A stretch of DNA of 64,000 bases from Lenisia limosa (taxonomy: Eukaryota; Protista; Breviatea). The DNA lies in assembly GCA_001655205.1 (NCBI GenBank), contig LPNZ01009878.1:71690-135689 (forward strand), read 5' to 3'. Of the stretch, positions 15,501-28,831 are shown in pieces. Numbering within the stretch: the first letter of the stretch is position 1; every line of letters starts with the position of its first letter. Under the pieces are notes generated by a model. That model had not been told where the DNA came from and made no database searches. It saw nothing but the letters and a program-made list of their open reading frames with translations. The position numbers were made by a program, and so were the translations under genes.

Positions 15501-18500
15501 GGACATCCAGAAGGTTTGCTCACTCCCTTTTAGCCAATTTCACACTTCAGGCAATGTATTTTGAATTTGGTGAAGACTTGAAAACAGTGCAAAACTTTGT
15601 CAATAGGAGCGTCTCCAAGGTAGGGGTGTGACAGGTTTTAACTCATTTCTCTCAAAGATGAATTTCACATAAAAGCTCAACTGCCACCACTATTTTGTGC
15701 TGCATCTTTGACGTTTTTCAGTCGGTTGCATCTCAAATGGTGTATGTCAGTTATGAAACCGAGAGGGAATATCCCGATCCTGCTGATCGCGCGGAGGTAT
15801 GATATTAACTGTTTTCTGTTATCATACATGCCGAATGACTAATTGCATCAGGTTAAAGAATTCGGTGTTCATGGCTTCCTTTCAGACCTCTTTGAGATGG
15901 ACCCATTCCACAAAAAGTGTATTTTAGACAGAACACAGCTCCACAGAATTGTAAGCCTTTTGATTATCCCTTCTCTCAGTCCTAAAATCCAATAATCTTC
16001 TTATTCTACGTGATTCTCTTCCTCACCACCCTATTCCAGGCGTATGGTAATGACATCAAATACCAAGAAATAGGCAAGCTCACAAAAGGAAACATTACTT
16101 CAGCGTATTACGGCAATAATGATATTGTGACAATGAAAAAGTCCTACTACTCTGGCGAAATGGTGTATTCGACAAAGTTTGAGGGTCGCCATTCTTCATC
16201 TCTTTAGAACTTTGTTATACATTTGCTTACCATATCCAGGACTTTCTTCAAAAAACCGGAAGTCATTACCCCCGNNNNNNNNNNNNNNNNNNNNNNNNNN
16301 NNNNNNNNNNNNNNNNNNNNNNNNNNNNNNNNNNNNNNNNNNNNNNNNNNNNNNNNNNNNNGAATGAAGAGAAGATTCTGGCCTTGCAGCGCCGAATGGA
16401 TGATGCTGACACCAAAATCGCGCATTACAAGGAGTAGGCTCGTGACCTAAGTGCTGACATTGCAGGAAGCAACGCGAAATGAAGGGACGACTCGCAGAAA
16501 TCAATGACCACATCAACAGAAACAAGGAGGCTGGTGTAGGCTGGCCAGATTCTCTTTGTTGTGTGCTGTTCTGAGCCAGATTTTCTTCCTTGTATGCTGT
16601 TCTGATTGCTGTAGAGAAGTTATCAGCGCCAGATCCATGACCAAAAGAAGTTGTTGGGCCAAAAATGTAGGGGCAGGCTGCACGTGATTATTGTGTTGTG
16701 TAAAACTCTTCTCATATAAAATATTCTAAAATCGGTTTTTTTTGACATAATAGCAACTGCTGAGGAAGTATTGAATACAATTCGCAACCAACCTTCAGCG
16801 GAAGAAGAAATCCGGAAGGTGGGTCTCTTTATCTCTTTCTATCAAGCTTCCGTTTAAGTCATGTTTGATATCATCCAATGACATTCAAGAATGAGGAGAA
16901 CATTGCTAAAGTGTGGGCAAAATACAACGGCAAGCCAGCAGACCTCGTGGTATGTTTACGCGACTGAATGAGGCAATCGCTGACGTTCTAGAGTGCTTTG
17001 ATTCCTGGTCTTGAGAAGTACAGCAAGAGACGCACCGGTCTCATTCGGAGAGCTGTCTGCAAAATCGAATATGAGAAGGTCGACTCGCAACTCAAACACC
17101 TGGAGGTTGCTGGGGTGAAAACGGGCTTTTGTGTGTTGCTTTTTATTTTGGTTTTGTTTTTTCAAGGATCTGTTCAATCTTACCATTTGGTGTTGGCTGT
17201 TCATATGAAGATTGAGACTGACTTTGTAGAATATTATCGCAGAATTCCGTCGCCAGTTCAACATCTGTAAGCCTCCAACAGAACCAAGCCTTGTCCTTGT
17301 TGTTAACTGTTTAGCGAAAGACGCACATGAAGAGGCACATACACAGATGATTAATGCACGCACCGTAGCCAACAACGTAAGAAATGAGCCTGATTGAAGT
17401 CGGTTGAATATTTATGCCATCAGGTCTGGCCCTACGAAAAGAACGGCGAAAAGGAGATTTATGACTCTGTAAGTGATTTATGGTGTTCTCTGACGTTTTA
17501 GCTCCCTGACAACCTTGCTGAACTCACCACAACTCTGATTCGTATAGCAGCCCAAATTAACGTAAGTACTGTTTTTCATATTGTTAAACCCTTTACTTTG
17601 GTGACCATCCCAGGCCGTGCACACTGGTCATCGTGATATTAAAGCAGAGTTCGAATATGCGAAGGAGGCACTTGCTGCTTGTGTTCGAAAAATCAAGGAA
17701 ATCTCAATGACGATCACAAACACTGGGGTGAGCGTGATAGTCTTGCCTTTTGTTGAACTGATGATCTCTATTAAAGCAGTTTTTCACCCCTCCCCCTAGG
17801 ATGACATTGTCCGCCGTCGTAAGGCTTGGGTCAATGAAGTGGACTCCATCGTGGAGCGTGCCAATGAGAGCTTCAAGGAAGTCGTGAATTACATGGACTT
17901 CAGCGCCTACCTCGAATTCGGTTTGCTACTGCTTCCTTCCTTCCTTCCTTCTTCACTTGCTTGTCATTTTGCCTTGTTTATTCTCCAGACAAGCCCAAGG
18001 ACTCTGAAAAGAATGACTTGTTCAATGAGTTCGGCATCAAAATCATGGTTAAGTTCCCGCACCACACTGAGCATCGTGTTTTGAGCAGTAGGCTTCGTGT
18101 TGCAACCCTGTCTTTTTTTAATCAATCACGTCTATTATGGGATGACAAAGATGGGATCATAGCTTGACATTTCAGCGATGGCACAATCTGGAGGAGAAAA
18201 AGCGATCTCCGTTATGTCTTTCCTTCTCGCTCTCCAAACCGTGGCAAAGTGTCCATTTAGATTTATTGATGAAATCGAACAAGGTGGGGTTGTAAAAAAA
18301 ACTTATTATGAGTATTACTCCCCACCTTTCCCGTTCAGTTTTTATTTTTTACTTTTCAGGCATGGATAAAAAGAATCACACGATGGTGTGGGAGGCCATC
18401 CTCAAAACTACCAGGTCGCAGCATTCCCCCCAGGTTTGTTTTAACTTGTAACTCATGCAATAGTACTTCATTCTCACCCCCAAACTGCGTGATGGCTTTA

Positions 18501-18789
18501 AATACACACGTGACGTTCGTGTGCATCTACTTTTTAACGGTTGGCCCAACTATCTGGCTTGAGTTTTTTTTTTGTGTGTGTCTTTTTGTCTCATTATCCA
18601 GGTCACTTCAACCACATGTTCAAGCGCCGCCTGATTGAGATGGTTGAGAATGAAGCCTCTCAGCCTGTCACCTCGCAACCGCCACAAAACTCACAAAGAG
18701 CGGTTCGTGTCTCTTGACTGTCTTGACCTCATCTTATTATGTAGACCCCCAAGAGACAGAGGAAACGAAGAATTGATGATGAGGATTGA
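12565..18789 (+). CDS. SMC5: Structural maintenance of chromosomes protein 5 (divergent)
   Basis: N-terminal head: GAIKRVRVQNFMTYD and Walker A ILGPNGTGKSS. Long coiled-coil exons follow. C-terminal head: [36 protein letters not shown] and QYFILTPKL, which is SMC5-type. An N gap interrupts 16275-16361. Confidence 0.9.
13621..13728. repeat. Tandem repeat, 25-27 bp x 4, spanning a SMC5 donor site
   Basis: The unit gatcgtgaggagaggacggtg(c/g)ttg starts at 13621, 13646, 13673 and 13698. Confidence 0.95.
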
Positions 18790-18906
18790 GTATTATTTAA
18801 TAGAAGTTATTGATGGTACTTTGGCCCTTTTCTCTCAACGAAACATCAAATAGTACTTCATAACCCCAACCCCAACCCCAAGAATAACAAGAATAACGGC
18901 TTTGCT

Positions 18907-21900
18907 TTAGATCTGCAAGTAGGACGCGGGAACAACTCCTCTCCGCCCTCTCAGCGACACCTCAACCCAACCATCGCCGTCAGGCTGAATGGTCAGAAAT
19001 CACCTGGTCATATGGACTTTGTCTTTAAATAAAACTAGGCACCCGCCTCTCCAGCATCTAATAAAACTAGGCACCCACCTCTCCAAGCATCTCCACGTTG
19101 TCACCCGGCTTGATTGACAACTCGCCTGGACCAGAAGACGCGTATTCATAGAGAACTTCAGTAGATGCTGACACTATTGCGACTGAGCAGTTAGACCAAA
19201 AACTGCCTGTGTTGAAATGTGATATTTCAGCAAAGATGAAACATTTCAGTTTAAGATGATATTTCAACCCCTCACAATCGTCCATTGTTGAAGCTCCTAC
19301 GGTTGAAGCGCCCATAGTTGCGGTGGTAGTGTTATCATCAAACTCTTCGAACGAACTAAACCGTCAGAAGAGGTACAAACCCAGCTTACGGTGACGGTTG
19401 AGGCTTCTTCAACTTTGAGGTTGGATCGGTCTTCCTGAAGGCAACTGCAACCACTGCCCCAGCCACTGTGAAGGCACCAAGAGCTCCTCCCTACAATATA
19501 AGACCACTTATGTTGCTGCAAAGCGTTTATTCAAAAGACCTGCCTACAACGAGGGTCGTAGTTGAGATGCCATCATCGCCTGCGTTGTACTCTTCCGCAA
19601 TAACGGGTCCAGTGAACTCGACCATCTTCACTCCTAGGGTGTTGCATGAGAGACAGAAAACATGACAGAGTATTGTCACCCAAATCATGGCAGCTGACCT
19701 GAACCGAACTGGAGTTGGACAGAGTTGGACGACCAAAGGCCAGCTACTGGGGCAAAGAACAGATCAACGGTGCGGTTGGAGGATACCTGATTTGTCAAAG
19801 GGCTACTGTGCCGCTTTCACCATGAAAATACAGCATGACATAGGCAGGGTGACCATACCGAGGGAAGTGGACACTCCGCGTAACCATTGGAGGCGCTATA
19901 CGACCCAACTGTCGTACTGAAACCCTCGGATTCATGTCCATATCTAAATGATTAGCTCTTAACAATCCTGAAATGAATTCATATCCTGATGTCTGAGCGG
20001 AAAGAATCCTTCCCATACCTGCAAACACCAGTAGTTGAGTCTCCCATGGAGTCAAGGTAGCGACCAAAGATGCGAATGGGGAATCTGGGAGGTGGGGGAG
20101 TGAGATAAAGAAAGTGTCAACAGTTCAGACTAATAGATTGTAGTCCTCCGCTCACTCTGCACCAGTCAAGGGGACGATATTCGGTACTGCGGCGGACAAA
20201 ACGGGGGCAATCACAACCTTGACCTTGGTCGTGAGCTATTACATACATACGTAGCCTCTTATTTCAATTTAAAGAGAGCCTACCTTGACACCAGCACCTG
20301 GGGCAGCACCAGCCTGGCTGATGGCCATCGTCGCACTTCCTACGGTGAAGGTCAGAATTTGCAAAGAAGGAATTGGAAAAAGAACGGAAGATGCCAAAAG
20401 CCAAAAGCCAACCCAGGGTCTGAACAGCCACAGTTGGACACGTGACTTTGAGGTTGGCTGAGTCCTTGGTGCAGGCAGTCGACGAAATATCGGCGCTGTT
20501 CAAAGTGACCGTTACTGCTGATGATCTGCAAAATGGGTGAAAATTAGGCTTGGAAGGTCAAAAGAGAACAGGAAAGAGAAAAAGATCTGGAAGAAGAAAG
20601 AAAATTAGACAAGGAACAGTATTCCGTTGACATACGGGATAGCATCAACGGTGAGAGTGATGCTGGAGGCCTCGTTGGCAATGAGGAATTTCGGAGAGGC
20701 GGCTGTGACTGTTGTTGTTGATGCTGCAGTACCACACATATTATTGGTGCAACTGGGAGAGGTCATCATCACATGATGGTAGGTAAACATAATACAAGAA
20801 ATGGTTGAAGTCCATGAAGCTAACGTGAGAGATCCCGAGCAATCGCTGTTTTGGAGACAACTGGTACGACACTTGCTGCTGCATGCGTAGTTGTAGCAGG
20901 AAATGACCGGACTGTTTAGTCAGTTTTGATATCCAACCCCCAGGCAACTAGAATACTCCGCCAGCAACCTGTCAACGCACGATCCGGAATAGCACGCGCC
21001 CTTAGGAAGGAACTCGTCTGCTGTTGTTGAGCACATGGCCTTCCCACAACTCTGGCCGTCTCTACTTGATTGGCAGTATCCTGAACCGCATGATTGGCAT
21101 TCCTGTCAAAGTGAGTGTGATGTGGTTAAGAATAGTAAGCTTTCCCTTAGAATGCATAGTGCCAAAACAAGTCCCAGCCTACCCCTCCACACGCCTTGTT
21201 GCAGCACATGCCCGAGGCGCAGACGCCACTTTGACACTCACTCTCCAACTCGCAAGTCTTGCCATTCGCCTGAACATTGAGGATGGTTTTGAGTGGTTAC
21301 AGGAACAATATTATAGTACTATCGTCAAGAAGACAACTCAGACCTTGAGATTGGTGTCGCAAATGGGAACAGAACAGACATCGGCAAGGACCGGGGTGGC
21401 TAAGCCTGAGTCTTGACAGAGCGATTGGCTTCAGTGTGAAACAACAAAAAATTGAATAAATAAATAGAAGCAGAAGTCTAAAATTTTAAATAAGCAAATC
21501 AAAGCGGATAACATATGTACCTGAGCTCCGTGGCTAGACATGCCTGCATACCTGACTTCGTCGCCATCCTCATTGACGCATACTGCGGTGCGGGAGCGAT
21601 GGCCATCGCCTGAGGCGCTGCATGCTGGAGCGCAGGTTGAATACACCGACGTCAACCACATGTAGTGCACCTCTGGGGGGGGGGTTAGACTCCAGGCTTG
21701 AGATCACAAGATCACGCACCTGAGCAAGCTGTGCCGGTCCAGGACCCGTCACTGCCACAAGTCATTTCGGTCTCATCTCCATCTGGCCCTGAGGAGGCTG
21801 CACGGAATCCTGCGGGTGTGAAAAGAGTCAAGGGGCTAAAAGAAGAAAAAGTGTCACTAACCCCTTGTAATTCCAAGTAGGCATACCTCTGTTGCAAGTG

Positions 21901-24900
21901 AAGGTACATTTATCTCCCACTGCAACTGAGCCACAAGAGGACGCTGCATTGGGGAGAGATCCACACTTGATTACTGGGGGGGGGGGGGANNNNNNNNNNN
22001 NNNNNNNNNNNNNNNNNNNNNNNNNNNNNNNNNNNNNNNNNNNNNNNNNNNNNNNNNNNNNNNNNNNNNNNNNNNNNNNNNNNNNNNNATATTTGAAAAA
22101 CAAAATAAGTTCATAACTCAGACCCACATTTACAAGACGGCACACTCTCCATGAATTTGCCATTGCTGTTGCAAGTCATTGTTTTCGTTTTTCTAGAAGT
22201 ACGTCAGGGTCAAAATCCAAAATCCAATTTAGAAAAATATAAAAGTGACTTCCAAAAAGGCAGCTTACACTCCAGAGGAAATGTGATATCCCGAACTGCA
22301 GGTGATGGTGCAAGTGTTGGGAGCCTTTTGGGTTACAAGGGAAAAGAGGAGGCATTACGATAGCAGCATGAAAAGTCCACCAACATTGACGGAAGAACAC
22401 GCAGTTGCTGCATCGGAGTTCGCTACCGTGGGTTTGGCACATGAAATTGTGTCGGTGGCTGGATGGTTGGTGTTATGTCCATCTCGGCGTAAAAGTCTAC
22501 ATATTCCTCTGTTTTTACTAGCAATTGGAGGTTTCCAAGAGTTATTTTTTCTTCTCAAAATAAGAGGACACCATAATCCTTAGATCCCCAGCTTTACCCA
22601 CCTGGACACGTGGTTGATGACCACACTCCAGAGCTATTGCAAGTCACTGTACGCGTGGAGCCGGATTTACACTGAATCGAACATCTGAATAATTAGGTTT
22701 CGATGTCACTAAACTCAGAACTGCAGGGAACCAGGGTAGGCCAAGCTGAGAAGCAGAACCCACGTTGAACCAGAGGCGGCGCCGCTGCAGCCAGCACCAA
22801 GGGTTCCGAAGGGCACAGCCGACTTTTGTCCGCCTATCGAGTCAGCATCGTTGTTGATTCAAAGGTTAGAGAGGCCCGGGCCTACATCTGCAGACGCCGG
22901 TGTTGCAGTCGGCTGACACTGCCGGTTTTTCTTCCTTGCAGTACTGCGAACCTGAAGCATGACCTTTCACAAGAAAAACAGCCAGATATGTATATCCTCG
23001 AGAAATACTGGCCTTGTCAACAACAGAACATCATGGCCTGACACCCCCAACTTTGTGAGCACGTGACGGAGCGCGTTTTGGTGCCGCCGCCGCACTGTTT
23101 GTTGCAGCTTCCCCAGTCGCCAACCTAGGGCTGTCAGACGGTTCTCAGAACAGGGAGTAGCCATATACTATTCAGACATGGGGTTGCAACCAAGTCCCCA
23201 CAGACTGTCCAATAGCCACAAAGCTGTGCGTTACAGACTTGTGACGACTCTGGAGCCGGACCTATTTATTAGTGACCTCATTGTAGCGGTATATATATAC
23301 ATCAAAAGTCCTTGTATGGCATACCCAGGAGTTCTAGGCACTGGGCAATATCTCTGTTGCAGTTGACAGTTCGCGTGCGGGTTCCGCCGTTGCAGGTCTC
23401 AGAGCAGCTGCTCCACGAACCAGTCTAAGATGGTCAACTATCAACTATCCAAGTCCAGTCTAAAATGCTATCAACCCTCCCACGTTCCATGACGGACATG
23501 ATTCGGTGTTGCATGTTTGCGATGCGGCGGGTTTGGAGAGGGAAAGAGCCGTGCACTCACTATCTGCAACCTACATACAATGACTAATTGTATATCAATC
23601 TGTGAGAACTACTTGTGGTTCTAANNNNNNNNNNNNNNNNNNNNNNNNNNNNNNNNNNNNNNNNNNNNNNNNNNNNNNNNNNNNNNNTGGGTACAAGACA
23701 CAAGACTCTCTACCCTCCCACTCGTTTGCCAAGGTACAAACAGTTAACAACGCGGGTTTGCGTTCCACTTCCGCACTTCTTCGAACACTCACTCCAATCA
23801 CCAGTCTAAAACATTAGTCTAACCAAAAACATTGTTGAGATGCATTTCAGGAAGGTCATGCGGTCATCACTCATTTCCCTTATTCGGTCCTACGGAGTTC
23901 AAACCTCATATTTAGCGCAGTCCATAGTGTTACAGGCCTTGGTAGTCGCGGGCTTGGATTTGATGTCACAATAGAAGTCACTGACAACGGTTCCGTCATT
24001 CTTGACCTGGTACCGTGATTACTGTCTTTGAACTTTCACATCCAAGATGTTTGATTCTCAACTGGCATTCATTGTCGACCCCCTCCCACCTTGCAGGTAA
24101 CTGTCCGCATGTTTTCACCTCCTCCACAAGGCTTATCACAGTCAGACCAGGAACCTAGGGGTGTGATTAAAAGACCAAAGGGTAGATACAACGAGAAAGA
24201 TAATGATACCACATTAAAATTAATAAAATAATGATATCACTTCAGTCCCAAAACAAGATGTGAGTAAATCTTCAATATAAAAAAGAAGATAAATCCAAGG
24301 ACTTATCATGATATGACCAACCGGTGGTCCACTCGTAAGAAGCGTCACAAGGGGGGCTCTGGCAGCTCTGCGAAATTGCAGGGAATCCTGAGGGACAAGC
24401 ATCGGATGCCTTACCTAGGAAAATGAGGTGCGCCTTATAAAAATTCCTGCACCTTCGGGATCAATGCAGGCGGTTCGGGTCTGTGTACCGGACTGTCCGC
24501 AAGGCCCAGTGCACTTCGACCATGCGCCTGGTGAACTGAACTGTAAGGTCGTCTATTGTGCTATTCCGGTACCAGCCCCTTACTTGATGTAACTTGCTTT
24601 GTCCGCTTCAATAGCAGAAATGCAGGATTTGGAGACACAGACCTGGAAAGTTAGTAAAGACTGTTGGAACACAATAAGCATCAAACACGGGTCCTTAAAT
24701 GGTGACGGCAACAAGCAACTGGATCCTTGGTCTTGGACATTAAACACACCTTATCCGTGTCACAAGTGGTTCCTGTCGGGACAGTCCAGGAAGAAGAAGC
24801 TGAATACATGTCAACTCATGAAGGAAGCTATCCAATCACAAACAGCCACCTACAGAAGCAAGAGCCTGAAGAGCTTTTGCAGTAGCTTCTTGTGCAGTCT

Positions 24901-27900
24901 ACCGGCTTAAGTGGGTCGCAGCTGTATTTATTAGCACTAAACGAAAGAACTGGCGAATATGCAAAGAAATAAGATAGCAGTCCCCATACGCAGTGTAGGA
25001 GCTCGAGCACCCCTGCGTTTGAGAGACACATTTTCCCTATAGCAATAAGACAAAGGATGCAAAGGGAGATGCGAGGCATTTTGACCCAAAGGGCAAACCT
25101 GGAAGCAAGTTGAACGACTCTCGATTCCGTCGGAACACGCAGTGCCAGCCAATTTATGTGACACTAAGGGGTCAAGCCCGCCAAAAGAACAACACACTCA
25201 TCACCCACGTACTCGGGCATTTAGAGGACTTTCCGGTGCAATAGTCGGCCAAATCACAAGCTGAGTCAACGCCAGTATTTTTGGCATTGCAAAGGGTTCC
25301 TGAAGACCTGATATGGTGAGATGAGCAAAGACTCCAATTTTGCTGAGACAGGCATACTTGAACTGGCAGCTGGCGCAGCAGGGGTCATAGTCAGAACAAA
25401 CAGCGCCTGAGTTGAACTTGCAAGTTGTGGGGTTGCAACATGAGTCGCTGCAGCCTTCCATACCACAGTCACAATCCTCTCCTTTAGAAATCAGAAATTA
25501 CAAAAGACAATATCGTTGTTGACAAGTATGTACTAGATGAGCACTATCATACCAGTTTCGACGAGGCCATTTCCACACACGTTGGAAGTCTTGCCAACAT
25601 TGGCACCTAAAACGTAATTTCATGTTTGGAAAAAAACCGTGGTAAAGCCTCCCCCCCCCCAGACTATCCGTGGTACATGCGCCATTGCCGTTACTGACCC
25701 AGGTGTCCAGAGCAGTCACGCTAGAAGCGTCCCAATTGGAGGGGTTTGATCCAGAAGACGACATAATCTAAAGAGTCATAGCCCTCCTGTGGCAGGAAGA
25801 TATCCAAAAGAGACGAGGCACTCACCAGTCCTGAGGGAGTAACGTGTCTCAGACTCCAGTTGTGTCCAAGCTGAGTGGGTCAAAACAGTTCAGTAAAGCT
25901 GGAGCAAACCTCGTGAGTTGCTGTGGCTCCAGCATTGTCAGCTGCGCGGTTGATGGTAAACTGGTTGATACTGCAGGAGCTGCTACCACACATCGAACCC
26001 ACCGGAGCTGAAAATGTCAACTATTCAAAGAGAACTCCAAACTCCAAATCAACATAACATGTAATACTCAGAACCGCCTACCATAGCCAATAACATTGTC
26101 ACGGAAATCAGTTCCACTGAAAAGAAGCGTGTTGTCGTAAACTCGCAAATCGCGGCTCCAAGCCTACAACATGAGACCAGTACTTGGTGGCTCAAACCTT
26201 GAACTGAGACAGCAGGCTTTCATAGTCTACGCTATCACCAGTGTAGGTCGGGGAGTAGGGATCACCATCTGATTTTTGTTATTCGGAAATTGCAAAGTTT
26301 TTGATGAATAACATTGCCAGCAACATACGGGCGAAAGTGGACATTCGAGAAATTACTACATTGACACTGTATGAGGCGCCTGCCCTGTTTTGGTAGCGCG
26401 TGTGAATTGCGTTGGCTGCGTCAGCGCAAGATTGGTGCGTGTTGGAACCGAAGTCTGAGGGATTAAAGACGTCATCATCATGCCGGCATGACCCTTCATA
26501 CTGACCCAGCGTGCGTAGTCGTTGACAAATTCCACCTCAAGATACAGCTGTGTGGCTCGTCTGTGTCGTTCCTATAATACAGTTAATCATGCCCACTTCT
26601 TTGCAATCCCATGTCCATCTTGCAGACCACTTGTTCAGGAGTGCGGCGCTCAATTTGGTGTTTCAAGGCGTCTTGTTCGGCCAATTCGTCCTCAGTTGCT
26701 GGAGCACTCTGCAACAATGAATTAACGTCTTGAGTTGCCCCTTCCTCCCATCATGGCCTGAGCAACCCCAGACCAAGCAAATTCCGTCATCCTGGAGTTC
26801 GGCTCGCGACACCACAATATGGTCATTGAGGCTATCCGGGTCCCTCTGGGGTGTGAAAGAATGGTCATTGAGGCTATCCGGGTCCCTCTAGGGTGTGAAA
26901 GAATGGTCATTGAGGCTATCCGGGTCCCTCTGGGGTGTGAAAGAATAATACGATTGAGTAACAGAAAAACGTCTTATGAAACCGATGAATACATACTCTT
27001 CTCATTTCAGCAACTTCGGGGTTGGAAACTTCAGCAGGGTGCGAAAGGCGCCATGATACTTGCTCGGTATGGATAGTTCCAGATACTCCTGGGTGATGAG
27101 CCAAGTACTATTAACAGCAGCACATTGGTAAAACATGTCCTCCTCACCTTCACAGAGGGAGGCAGACGACTTTAGATTTGAGGATACCCCATCAATCTGA
27201 AACATCAATACTTAGCAGCATGCCACAGCAAACAAAGATGTCACAACAAACCCAATTTACACTGTATCCCCCCACCGAAGCGGTTCCAATATATTGGCAT
27301 CTCTTGATAGTGGGGGTTATTGCGACTGATTTCATATCGGTGGGGTCATTGTTGATATAGAGAAACTCCTGGAAATCCTCGCCGTACAACTGCATTGTCA
27401 AATAAGGCTCAAAAGTTGTGGAAGTGTCCAGGGGTTGTTTGATACTATTAGAGAAAAAAAAGGTTACAATCCCCACCTGATCAAAAGGTTACAATCCCCA
27501 CCTTATCAAAAGGTTACAATCCCTCCCTGATCAAAAGGTTACAATCCCCACCTGATCAAAAGGTTACAATCCCTCCCTGATCAAAAGGTTACAATCCCTC
27601 CCTGATCAAAAGGTTACAATCCCTCCCTGATCAAAAGGTTACAATCCCCACCTGATCATTTCTGTCAAAATCAACCGAAAAGTCCTAAAATAATAAAATA
27701 AAGACGACATTGTCTGAACAGTCGAGGGCCTAACACCCCCCCTACTCTGCCGAAAGCCTGGAAAGACAGGCCCTTTTCAGAGACTGGGAATTCTCCACCA
27801 TCACGAGCCTGCTTTCCTCTTGTTACTTTCACCACTTCATAGTCTCCAGCAATTCGCACTGAAGATCGGTCTAGCAGGGGGGGGGGTCAGCCACAGCAAT

Positions 27901-28012
27901 ATCAATAAAGTTATGTGTGGTGCACCCACGAGAAAAATACAAGGCAGTCCTTCTTACTATTGACAGCGCAAACTGCAGCGACAAGCACACACAGAAAAAA
28001 GATGAACCTCAT
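18907..28012 (-). CDS. ADAM/ADAMTS-like type I membrane metalloprotease with TSP1, CCP/sushi, IPT/TIG-like, TM and cytoplasmic SH3 domains
   Basis: Signal peptide MRFIFFLCVLVAAVCA. Furin-type site RHRR precedes ATQLYLEVEFVND. Zinc motif HELGHNWSLRH and Met-turn IMSS. Disintegrin CGNGLVETGEDCDCG...CDLADYCTGKSSKCP. Repeated TSP1 units, e.g. TGDWSECSKKCGSGTQTRVVNC and GSWSSCSETCNGGTRTRTVNC. CCP units, e.g. TVTCNSSGVWSSTTC and MTCGSDGSWTGTAC. TM GGALGAFTVAGAVVAVAF. SH3 VLYEYASSGPGELSIKPGDNVEMLGE...GWVEVSLRGRRGVVPASYLQI*. Two N gaps lie inside the gene. Confidence 0.88.
26819..26944. repeat. Tandem repeat, 42 bp x 3, spanning a splice acceptor of the ADAM-like gene
   Basis: atggtcattgaggctatccgggtccctctggggtgtgaaaga occurs three times, with one SNP in the middle copy. 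Confidence 0.97.
27458..27657. repeat. Tandem repeat, 25 bp x 8, spanning an exon-intron donor of the ADAM-like gene
   Basis: The unit aaaaggttacaatcccc/tc/acctgatc is repeated head to tail 8 times with no spacers. Confidence 0.97.
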
Positions 28013-28831
28013 TTGAACAATGCCTCAACAACGACTAAACTCGGTGTTTTCTTTCAGTATGGAATAATATCCGCTATTCTTCAATCTTGTAAGCAGAGAA
28101 AAGCGACCTCTAATTGAGAAGGCTTGCAAATATACAGTTCAGCCGACAACAATTAGGACCATTCAGGTCTTAAATATGTTTAAAAACAGCTTGATTGAGG
28201 TTGTCTTGTGGGTCTAAGTGTCAAAATGGACAAAATCTAACCGCGCGAAATCTCGGTGATCTGGGTGATCTCAGTCACAATTGTGTAAAGGACATGTAAT
28301 TAATGCTACAAATGTAATAGCTGCTACTGCCTTGTAATTTTGTTGTGTGTCATGTGTGTGCAAGTTTGTGCAAGTTTATAAGTTGGCAGAGAGCTGGAGA
28401 GCAACTGGAGAGGGGCAAGCTGGTGGTAAGATGCATGATAAGTTGGAGGAAGACTGGAAGACTTGAAGATAACTTAATAGGCAAACAATATTCAGGTTTC
28501 AATTGGGAATTTGAAAACACTGGTTGTTAAAGGAATGCAATACATGACTAATTGTACCTTATTATTGAAACCTATGCTAAATGAAATATCAACCAAAAGT
28601 AATTGAACCACTCCATTATCAAATCATACATTGGTTACTTAATTACACTCCATTGTCAAAATCCTTAATTACAATCCATTGTCGAAATCATACATTGGTT
28701 ACTTAACTACATTTCAACGAGACAATATAACTATTTACAAAAATAATATTTTTTTAAAAAAACAGCAGTATCAAACATGACATGGCAATAATATAGTTTA
28801 AATAGACACCTTAAATAAATTGGCCGAAAAG

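Follow-up and report, generated by a model that had tools for sequence, protein, structure and literature searches.

Does a single gene of a protist encode one membrane protein in which an ADAM-type metalloprotease, a long array of TSP1 and sushi modules and an intracellular SH3 domain are joined in the same chain? This question is raised by a locus of Lenisia limosa (Breviatea; contig LPNZ01009878.1, assembly GCA_001655205.1), located at positions 18907-28012 of the 64,000-nucleotide stretch of DNA that we analysed (contig positions 71,690 to 135,689, forward strand), hereafter called the window, to which all coordinates refer. A preliminary description, made from the sequence alone, had read the locus as one spliced open reading frame (ORF) that combined the ADAM and ADAMTS families with sushi modules, IPT/TIG-like repeats and a terminal SH3 domain. 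We find it likely that the locus is one expressed gene for a type-I membrane ADAM (adamalysin, M12B) protein with TSP1 and sushi modules in its ectodomain and an SH3 domain in its cytoplasmic tail. The gene is real and expressed, and its stalk, transmembrane (TM) segment and SH3 domain lie on one transcript.

The ORF occupies the minus strand and runs from an ATG at 28012-28010 to a TAA at 18909-18907, so that its ends coincide exactly with the interval first proposed. Open segments in all three minus frames are enough to reveal the signal peptide, prodomain motifs, zinc motif, disintegrin, TSP1, sushi and half of the SH3 domain; the gene model was built from 2 automatic dynamic-programming drafts, after which every junction was curated by eye. 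The curated model comprises 55 exons of 22-184 nt and 4665 nt of coding sequence, which encode 1554 residues without any internal stop, in a eukaryotic and very intron-dense genome. The introns are mostly 34-170 nt long, all 54 have GT..AG ends, and the splice phases fit at each of the 54 junctions. An in-frame TGA lies 4 codons upstream of the ATG at 28012, the largest non-coding stretch in the locus is the 290 nt of intron 2, a 25-nt tandem repeat, and exons 21 and 22 are 48 nt apart. The features of the encoded protein, with the evidence for each (P numbers designate related public proteins), are the following.

18907..28012, minus strand: whole coding region (curated model, 13 introns from RNA contigs and 2 junctions from contig ends)
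27962..28012, minus strand: signal peptide, residues 1-17 (sequence reading, hydrophobic peak)
26557..27961, minus strand: ADAM prodomain, residues 18-201 (colinear with P0032 from residue 4 and with P0009 over its Pep_M12B_propep part)
25605..26556, minus strand: M12B (reprolysin-type) catalytic domain, residues 202-395 (blastp to the Reprolysin-bearing P0009, P0119, P0131 and P0032)
25844..25915, minus strand: zinc motif, HELGHNWSLRH, split by an intron
25205..25577, minus strand: true disintegrin domain, residues 405-488, with CDLADYC (PF00200 on 2 exons)
24586..25204, minus strand: putative ADAM-type Cys-rich region, residues 489-591 (colinear with P0009, P0032 and fungal ADAMs, with which it shares cysteines)
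22890..24534, minus strand: five TSP1 repeats, residues 593-860, each over 2 exons (Pfam, alignment)
21724..22886, minus strand: three six-Cys sushi/CCP modules, residues 862-1035 (PF00084 on module 3, mutual alignment)
21359..21661, minus strand: sixth TSP1 repeat, residues 1041-1100 (weak Pfam match, alignment; RNA joins its second exon onward)
20731..21269, minus strand: unclassified Cys-rich region with 20 Cys, residues 1106-1215 (cysteine positions, partial RNA cover)
19569..20712, minus strand: beta-rich stalk rich in Ser, Thr, Ala and Val, residues 1222-1427, about 200 residues (all introns RNA-supported)
19437..19568, minus strand: single TM helix, residues 1428-1452, followed by RK (hydrophobicity scan; split by the RNA-supported intron 19491-19547)
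18910..19436, minus strand: cytoplasmic tail of 102 residues, 1453-1554, ending in the SH3 domain (Pfam on both SH3 exon halves)

The window contains 2 runs of N within this interval, and a break of the gene at these gaps, which had been named at the outset as the outcome that would undo a single-gene view, was examined before anything else. Both gaps turned out to be intronic, with the splice phase kept and the ORF uninterrupted.

21990..22088, no strand: assembly gap 1, 99 N in the window, 46 nt in reality, inside a 101-nt intron
23625..23687, no strand: assembly gap 2, 63 N in the window, 8 nt in reality, inside a 96-nt intron

Logan DNA contigs (run X2) and the N-free European Nucleotide Archive (ENA) contig L001 (ERZ3820729 NODE_68) bridge both gaps with identical fills, and both gap-bearing introns have GT..AG ends and stops in all frames. 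Gap 1 separates sushi modules 2 and 3; its intron is in phase 1 at either end, and the resulting linker reads C-K-L-I-K-C (...SCK-L-IKC...). Gap 2 divides TSP1 repeat 3, whose 2 exon halves flank it, each in phase 0. L001 equals the window over 27658-14808 save for a single mismatch within a repeat, and DNA depth is even across the locus at 35-40x; the Logan and ENA assemblies probably share the reads of the window, which makes this a closure at read level rather than one from independent samples.

Transcript evidence was obtained from run X1 of the same study, a small polyA library of 47 Mb, in the form of assembled contigs, which were compared with window 18700-24699. The run contains about one fifth of the sampled words of this interval and few beyond it. 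Thirteen introns were listed from the contigs, all of them CT..AC on the plus strand and hence GT..AG on the minus strand, and a G occupies donor position +5 in every one. A contig of 808 nt carries ten spliced junctions between 18984 and 20412 and spans the last exons to about 20440, a second contig of 324 nt overlaps it, adds 2 junctions and reaches 20915, and one more junction, between 22192 and 22269, lies inside sushi module 2. Two further junctions were read from contig ends, between exons 40 and 41 (eight loose letters at 21271) and between exons 42 and 43 (an ACAG overlap at 20915), and the RNA contigs that bear on the 20-Cys region cover 21182-21271 and 20416-20915. The RNA-spliced 3' part forms one frame through the 20-Cys region, the stalk, the TM segment, the tail and the SH3 domain to the stop. 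RNA depth is about 20 at the 3' end and has dropped to 1-2 by 22100-23150, as expected of a small polyA library. The locus is very probably a single gene: the splice phase is maintained across all 54 introns, non-coding stretches reach 290 nt at most, gap-holding introns divide single domains, and RNA contigs join the 20-Cys region, the stalk, the TM segment and the SH3 domain.

The N-terminal half of the protein was assigned mainly by comparison with relatives. In blastp searches the protein aligned over residues 4-613 with P0032 (E 6e-58), over residues 84-579 with P0009 (E 1e-53), over residues 207-786 with P0119 (E 2e-64) and over residues 181-860 with P0131 (E 5e-74); Pfam places Pep_M12B_propep and Reprolysin in these 4 proteins and Disintegrin in all but P0131. 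The alignments are unbroken at exon boundaries, and the gene model is therefore supported where RNA is missing. Our own Pfam searches were run on single exons (15-61 residues) and on 2 short domain sequences, and at exon level, where short queries have low power, there was no match to the propeptide, Reprolysin or ADAM_CR (PF08516), none for sushi halves, the 20-Cys region or the stalk, and none to ADAM_spacer1 or ADAMTS_CR on any exon tested. The prodomain carries a C-x-G-V-x-G motif, a Cys-switch-like cysteine (Cys195, 26777-26779), which aligns with the FKCGL cysteine of P0009, and an RHRR furin-type site (26557-26568). The 2 exon halves of the disintegrin domain match profile positions 2-47 (E 2e-8) and 48-74 (E 7e-5) of the 75 positions of PF00200.

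What follows the ADAM-type Cys-rich region sets this protein apart from simpler ADAMs. In P0009, P0032 and fungal ADAMs a hydrophobic C-terminal segment comes directly after the Cys-rich region, and in P0032 and the fungal proteins this segment is the TM helix, whereas here about 830 residues are inserted, made up of five TSP1 repeats, three six-Cys sushi modules, one further TSP1 repeat, the 20-Cys region and the beta-rich stalk. All six TSP1 repeats align on W-S-x-C...C-G-x-G...R...C; the first-half exons of repeats 1-5 match PF19030 or PF00090 with E values from 7e-4 to 2e-9, repeat 6 has a weak match (E 0.018), PF19030 (TSP1_ADAMTS) is the best-scoring model for most repeats, and the array is 30-38% identical to that of P0131. 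Sushi module 3, as a query of 58 residues, matches PF00084 at E 7.6e-8 and 33.1 bits against a cut-off of 20.7, and modules 1 and 2 were assigned through their alignment to module 3 alone; each module has six cysteines, not four.

The second half of the stalk, which had been described as IPT/TIG-like repeats, gave no Pfam match at E<=1, PF01833 included, and no match to sequences of the PDB at E<=10 with phmmer, and the 2 stalk halves are not similar to each other in an internal-repeat test (z 0.44). A single-sequence AlphaFold2 model of this half is all-beta with 7 strands, at a mean confidence (pLDDT) of 47.8 that is too poor for a fold search. The Pfam, PDB and internal-repeat negatives leave the IPT/TIG label without support at the level of sequence, and we describe the region as a beta-rich stalk instead.

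At the stricter hydrophobicity cut-off (1.9) only 2 peaks appear along the protein, the signal peptide and residues 1428-1452; a weaker hydrophobic segment at about residues 1302-1324, charged and proline-bearing, was considered as a TM helix and rejected. The SH3 domain at the end of the tail (residues 1501-1554; 19079-19165 and 18910-18984) is complete, with VLYEYA...GW...VPASYL, and its exon halves match SH3_1 positions 2-25 (E 1.5e-4) and SH3_9 positions 28-49 (E 2.7e-7), with SH3_2 matching as well. The tail introns 18985-19078, 19183-19275 and 19356-19389 are RNA-supported, and the first of them separates the SH3 halves. Most of the preliminary description is thus borne out by the curated model, the colinearity with relatives, PF00200, the hydrophobicity scan and RNA splicing: a single spliced ORF with signal peptide, prodomain, RHRR site, reprolysin, disintegrin and Cys-rich domains, one TM segment and a terminal SH3 domain. 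Its TSP1 repeats, including a later extra one, and its sushi modules are present in corrected numbers, six TSP1 repeats (five plus one) rather than about 6-7 and another, and three sushi modules rather than about 3-4, and the Cys-knot-like modules it listed gave no Pfam match on their exons, which leaves that label unsupported.

How unusual this architecture is depends on the public relatives. Three unnamed proteins, P0119 (a Logan transcript, SRR28082854, 1001 residues), P0131 (JGI, 1137 residues) and P0014 (JGI, 893 residues), share with the window protein the M12B propeptide, Reprolysin, TSP1_ADAMTS repeats and a single TM segment near the C-terminus, at 27-32% identity over 565-778 residues, and the ORF of P0119 is complete, on a transcript contig of 3415 nt. 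A signal peptide is present in P0119 and P0131 and was not detected at the P0014 N-terminus; P0119 and P0014 match Disintegrin, whereas P0131 has no such match and is without the second disintegrin half and the Cys-rich region. Unlike the window protein, these 3 relatives have from 1 to about 8 TSP1 repeats followed by the TM segment and a short tail, without sushi modules, 20-Cys region, stalk or SH3 domain, and they keep HE[MI]GHN[FL]GxxHD. A second set, P0026, P0135 and P0137 (metagenome, EukProt), has an ADAM core, a TM segment and one or two cytoplasmic C-terminal WW domains. These proteins thus have a built-in adaptor for proline motifs, parallel to the SH3 tail described here, but the adaptor is WW and not SH3, and Pfam lists no TSP1 or sushi in them. 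Neither Sushi nor SH3 appeared in any of the roughly 140 matches listed with precomputed Pfam assignments, from a word-based search that was not exhaustive. In the literature searched we found no description of non-animal proteins with ADAM and TSP1 domains and none of P0119, P0131 or P0014, and the ESM Atlas contained no large cluster with an ADAM-TSP1-sushi-SH3 architecture. The view that the whole architecture was unknown therefore holds in part: ADAM, TSP1 and TM in one chain are already public in P0119, P0131 and P0014, while sushi and SH3 are absent from the listed matches.

Outside animals and fungi, ADAM-like proteins that combine propeptide, Reprolysin and Disintegrin occur commonly in public data, among them those of the dinoflagellates Polarella, Effrenium and Symbiodinium. 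The M12B phylogeny that had been proposed as a check was built as a quick maximum likelihood (ML) tree of the catalytic and disintegrin region, which contained no ADAMTS catalytic domain; it placed the window protein in a weakly supported group of protist-type ADAM-like proteins (approximate likelihood ratio support, SH-aLRT, 89), TSP1 bearers included, and outside the clade of animal ADAMs (95) and likewise outside the fungal ADAMs. The supposed union of the ADAM and ADAMTS families was not upheld, since the disintegrin is a true one of ADAM type, the Cys-rich region looks to be of ADAM type as well, and the core lies among protist ADAM-like proteins; because of these features, and of the position of the core outside animal ADAMs, the TSP1 array looks like domain shuffling onto an ADAM and not like a link between the animal ADAM and ADAMTS families. 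As far as sequence comparison goes, the protein belongs to an unnamed and sparsely sampled family of TSP1-bearing membrane ADAMs, found in protist-like and metatranscriptome data, which it elaborates in a lineage-specific way; only the added sushi array and SH3 tail look special against its public relatives.

The comparison with named systems leads to the same placement. Animal ADAMs such as ADAM9, 12, 19 and 33 have in common with the window protein a prodomain, an M12B domain, a true disintegrin, what looks to be the same Cys-rich region, a TM segment and a cytoplasmic tail, which in animal ADAMs is engaged in SH3-mediated interactions (PMC4380453), but they carry an EGF-like module instead of TSP1 and sushi arrays, and their tails hold proline-rich SH3 ligands and no SH3 domain. 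The ADAMTS proteins resemble it in having a reprolysin-type catalytic domain followed by TSP1 repeats, which here score best with TSP1_ADAMTS; in contrast, they are secreted, have a disintegrin-like module that is not PF00200, and place their Cys-rich region and spacer after the first TSP1 repeat, whereas in the window protein the disintegrin is a true one, the Cys-rich region, apparently of ADAM type, precedes the first TSP1 repeat, a TM segment is present and exon-level searches detected no spacer. It does not share the secreted state of ADAMTS, its TM segment being on the same RNA contig as the stalk and the SH3 domain. Membrane proteins with an SH3 domain of their own in the cytoplasm are represented by yeast Fus1p and Sho1p, which bind formins and components of the mitogen-activated protein kinase cascade, the SH3 domain of Fus1p binding the formins Bni1p and Bnr1p (PMC3817587, PMC4411306); outside SH3 these proteins are unrelated to the window protein, with no protease and no repeat ectodomain, and Sho1p has four TM helices.

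Several observations weigh against a single, catalytically active membrane ADAM with the domain map given above. The intervals 21300-22099 and 23300-24699 show no RNA depth at all, and the 5' ADAM part (24700-28100) lies outside the RNA mapping, so that the ADAM core and the SH3 end are not connected by any one molecule; the 47-Mb library is represented by assembled contigs rather than by reads. Reprolysin and propeptide were assigned by alignment to relatives and not by a direct family match, and exons 2/3 and 5-7 permit alternative in-frame splicing. The cytoplasmic tail has no PxxP motif, and cis auto-inhibition of the SH3 domain is therefore not suggested. The zinc motif, HELGHNWSLRHV, departs from the consensus HExxHxxGxxHD at 2 positions, Gly to Ser and Asp to Val, and in the ML tree the branch leading to the catalytic core is long, at 2.02 where the median is 0.67.

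The last of these points bears directly on whether the protein is a protease. All 8 relatives with an extracted motif keep HE[MI]GHN.....HD, and 6 of the 8 also keep the Gly, so that the deviant motif and the long branch would fit relaxed constraint on catalysis. The same gene and protein could then be a proteolytically dead ADAM, an adhesion or signalling receptor like the inactive animal ADAMs 11, 22 and 23, in which the disintegrin, TSP1 and sushi domains would bind ligands and the SH3 domain would couple to the cortex, a reading to which we give a substantial chance, somewhat short of even. However, the zinc site keeps its three His, the catalytic Glu (Glu345) and the Met of the Met-turn (IMSS, 25756-25767), the Ser at the Gly position is a small residue, and the prodomain with its Cys-switch-like cysteine and furin-type site is retained, as expected for a zymogen. 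We put predicted catalytic competence at about an even chance. Of the surface protease first proposed, the ADAM-type membrane protein stands, and protease activity is uncertain because the zinc motif differs at 2 consensus positions.

Very unlikely, by comparison with the single-gene structure, is a model in which at least 2 neighbouring genes have been fused, such as a short ADAM over exons 1-21 and a TSP1/sushi/SH3 receptor over exons 22-55. No RNA molecule spans the whole locus, and retention of the intron after exon 21 (window 24584-24586, where the exon ends in AA and the intron begins with GTAAGG) leads at once to a K-stop and could yield a soluble isoform with prodomain, M12B, disintegrin and Cys-rich region. 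But the non-coding stretches are short, the longest being the 290-nt tandem repeat and the exon 21-22 gap 48 nt, phases fit at 54 of 54 junctions, no second signal peptide or strong hydrophobic segment occurs before residue 1428, and P0119, P0131 and P0014 hold ADAM core, TSP1 and TM on single ORFs, complete on the 3415-nt contig in the case of P0119; a two-gene split was rejected on the intron sizes, the splice phases and the absent second signal peptide. An assembly artefact or foreign DNA, that is, a chimeric scaffold or the locus of a co-cultured organism, is scarcely credible, for although the RNA library bears a metatranscriptomic label, the window is interrupted by runs of N and the ENA contig breaks off within the tandem repeat of intron 2, the 2 read-based assemblies are identical over 27658-14808 save for the one repeat mismatch, DNA depth is even at 35-40x and splice signals are uniform along the gene.

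Repeats touch the gene structure at several places. Intron 2 is mostly filled by eight copies of a 25-nt unit (window 27458-27658), within which contig L001 terminates and the sole mismatch between window and L001 (27650) falls. A 42-nt unit present three times (window 26819-26946) spans the acceptor of exon 6; copies 1 and 3 offer ...CCCCAG acceptors, and copy 2 ends in TAG, which is a usable in-frame acceptor (+14 residues) but stops read-through from copy 1. The length of the prodomain may accordingly differ by one 14-residue unit through the choice of acceptor. Within the SH3 domain the donor region of exon 54 is tandemly duplicated (32 nt twice, window 19028-19092), copy 1 having a GT donor, which the RNA uses, and copy 2 a GC. 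The RNA-supported intron 19356-19389 is 34 nt long, a length found in 2 further modelled introns.

On the plus strand at 17617-18369, ORF pieces with an SMC/ABC-type signature and a D-loop-like stretch (SGGEKAISVMSFLLALQ...FRFIDEIEQG) probably belong to a convergent neighbour gene that ends a few hundred bases from the 3' end of the ADAM gene. A query of the public protein set with the disintegrin exon gave 10 matches, of which a single one came from this genome: P0001 (L001:2244-2768, window about 25461-24937), a junk ORF that runs through introns and translates TGA as Trp. Among the protein-representative matches there was no public gene model for the locus, for which P0001 is the sole protein call made public. 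Evidently the genetic code used to predict genes in the ENA assembly was not a suitable one, and the protein set derived from it for this organism is therefore unreliable.

For a type-I membrane ADAM of this build, family knowledge suggests how it would work. A furin-type convertase would remove the prodomain at RHRR, the TSP1 and sushi array would serve as a spacer and as an exosite that binds ligands or substrates, in the manner of the ancillary domains of ADAMTS, and the SH3 domain would recruit proline-rich partners in the cytoplasm, from the cytoskeleton or the endocytic machinery. For the tails of animal ADAMs, binding of SH3 proteins is documented and correlates with catalytic activity (PMC4380453, PMC4103893); an SH3 domain within the receptor itself would make in cis the link between tail and SH3 that animal ADAMs make in trans. 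A bolder and rather doubtful extension is that this genome has expanded "self-coupled" ADAM receptors, in which TSP1 and sushi modules capture ligand or substrate and SH3, or elsewhere WW, wires the protease to the actin or endocytic machinery. If so, self-coupled ADAMs would be an independent, non-animal way to couple shedding or adhesion to the cortex.

TSP1-bearing reprolysins (ADAMTS) have been reviewed as conserved throughout metazoa (PMC3002383), and ADAMs as opisthokont proteins with simple stalks (PMC2770060). The relevance to the origin of animal sheddases that had been proposed was not shown, the core lying outside the animal ADAM clade, and the locus alone has no bearing on that origin. 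Together with its three unnamed relatives, the locus indicates that membrane-anchored ADAMs with TSP1 arrays occur outside the animal ADAM clade, and that such TSP1-bearing ADAMs can gain sushi modules and a built-in SH3 domain, which is useful for reconstructing how extracellular proteases gained their ancillary domains. It offers a concrete protein in which the link between ADAM tail and SH3 would be made in cis rather than in trans, and, should the doubtful extension above prove true, TSP1-bearing reprolysins would not be an animal invention.

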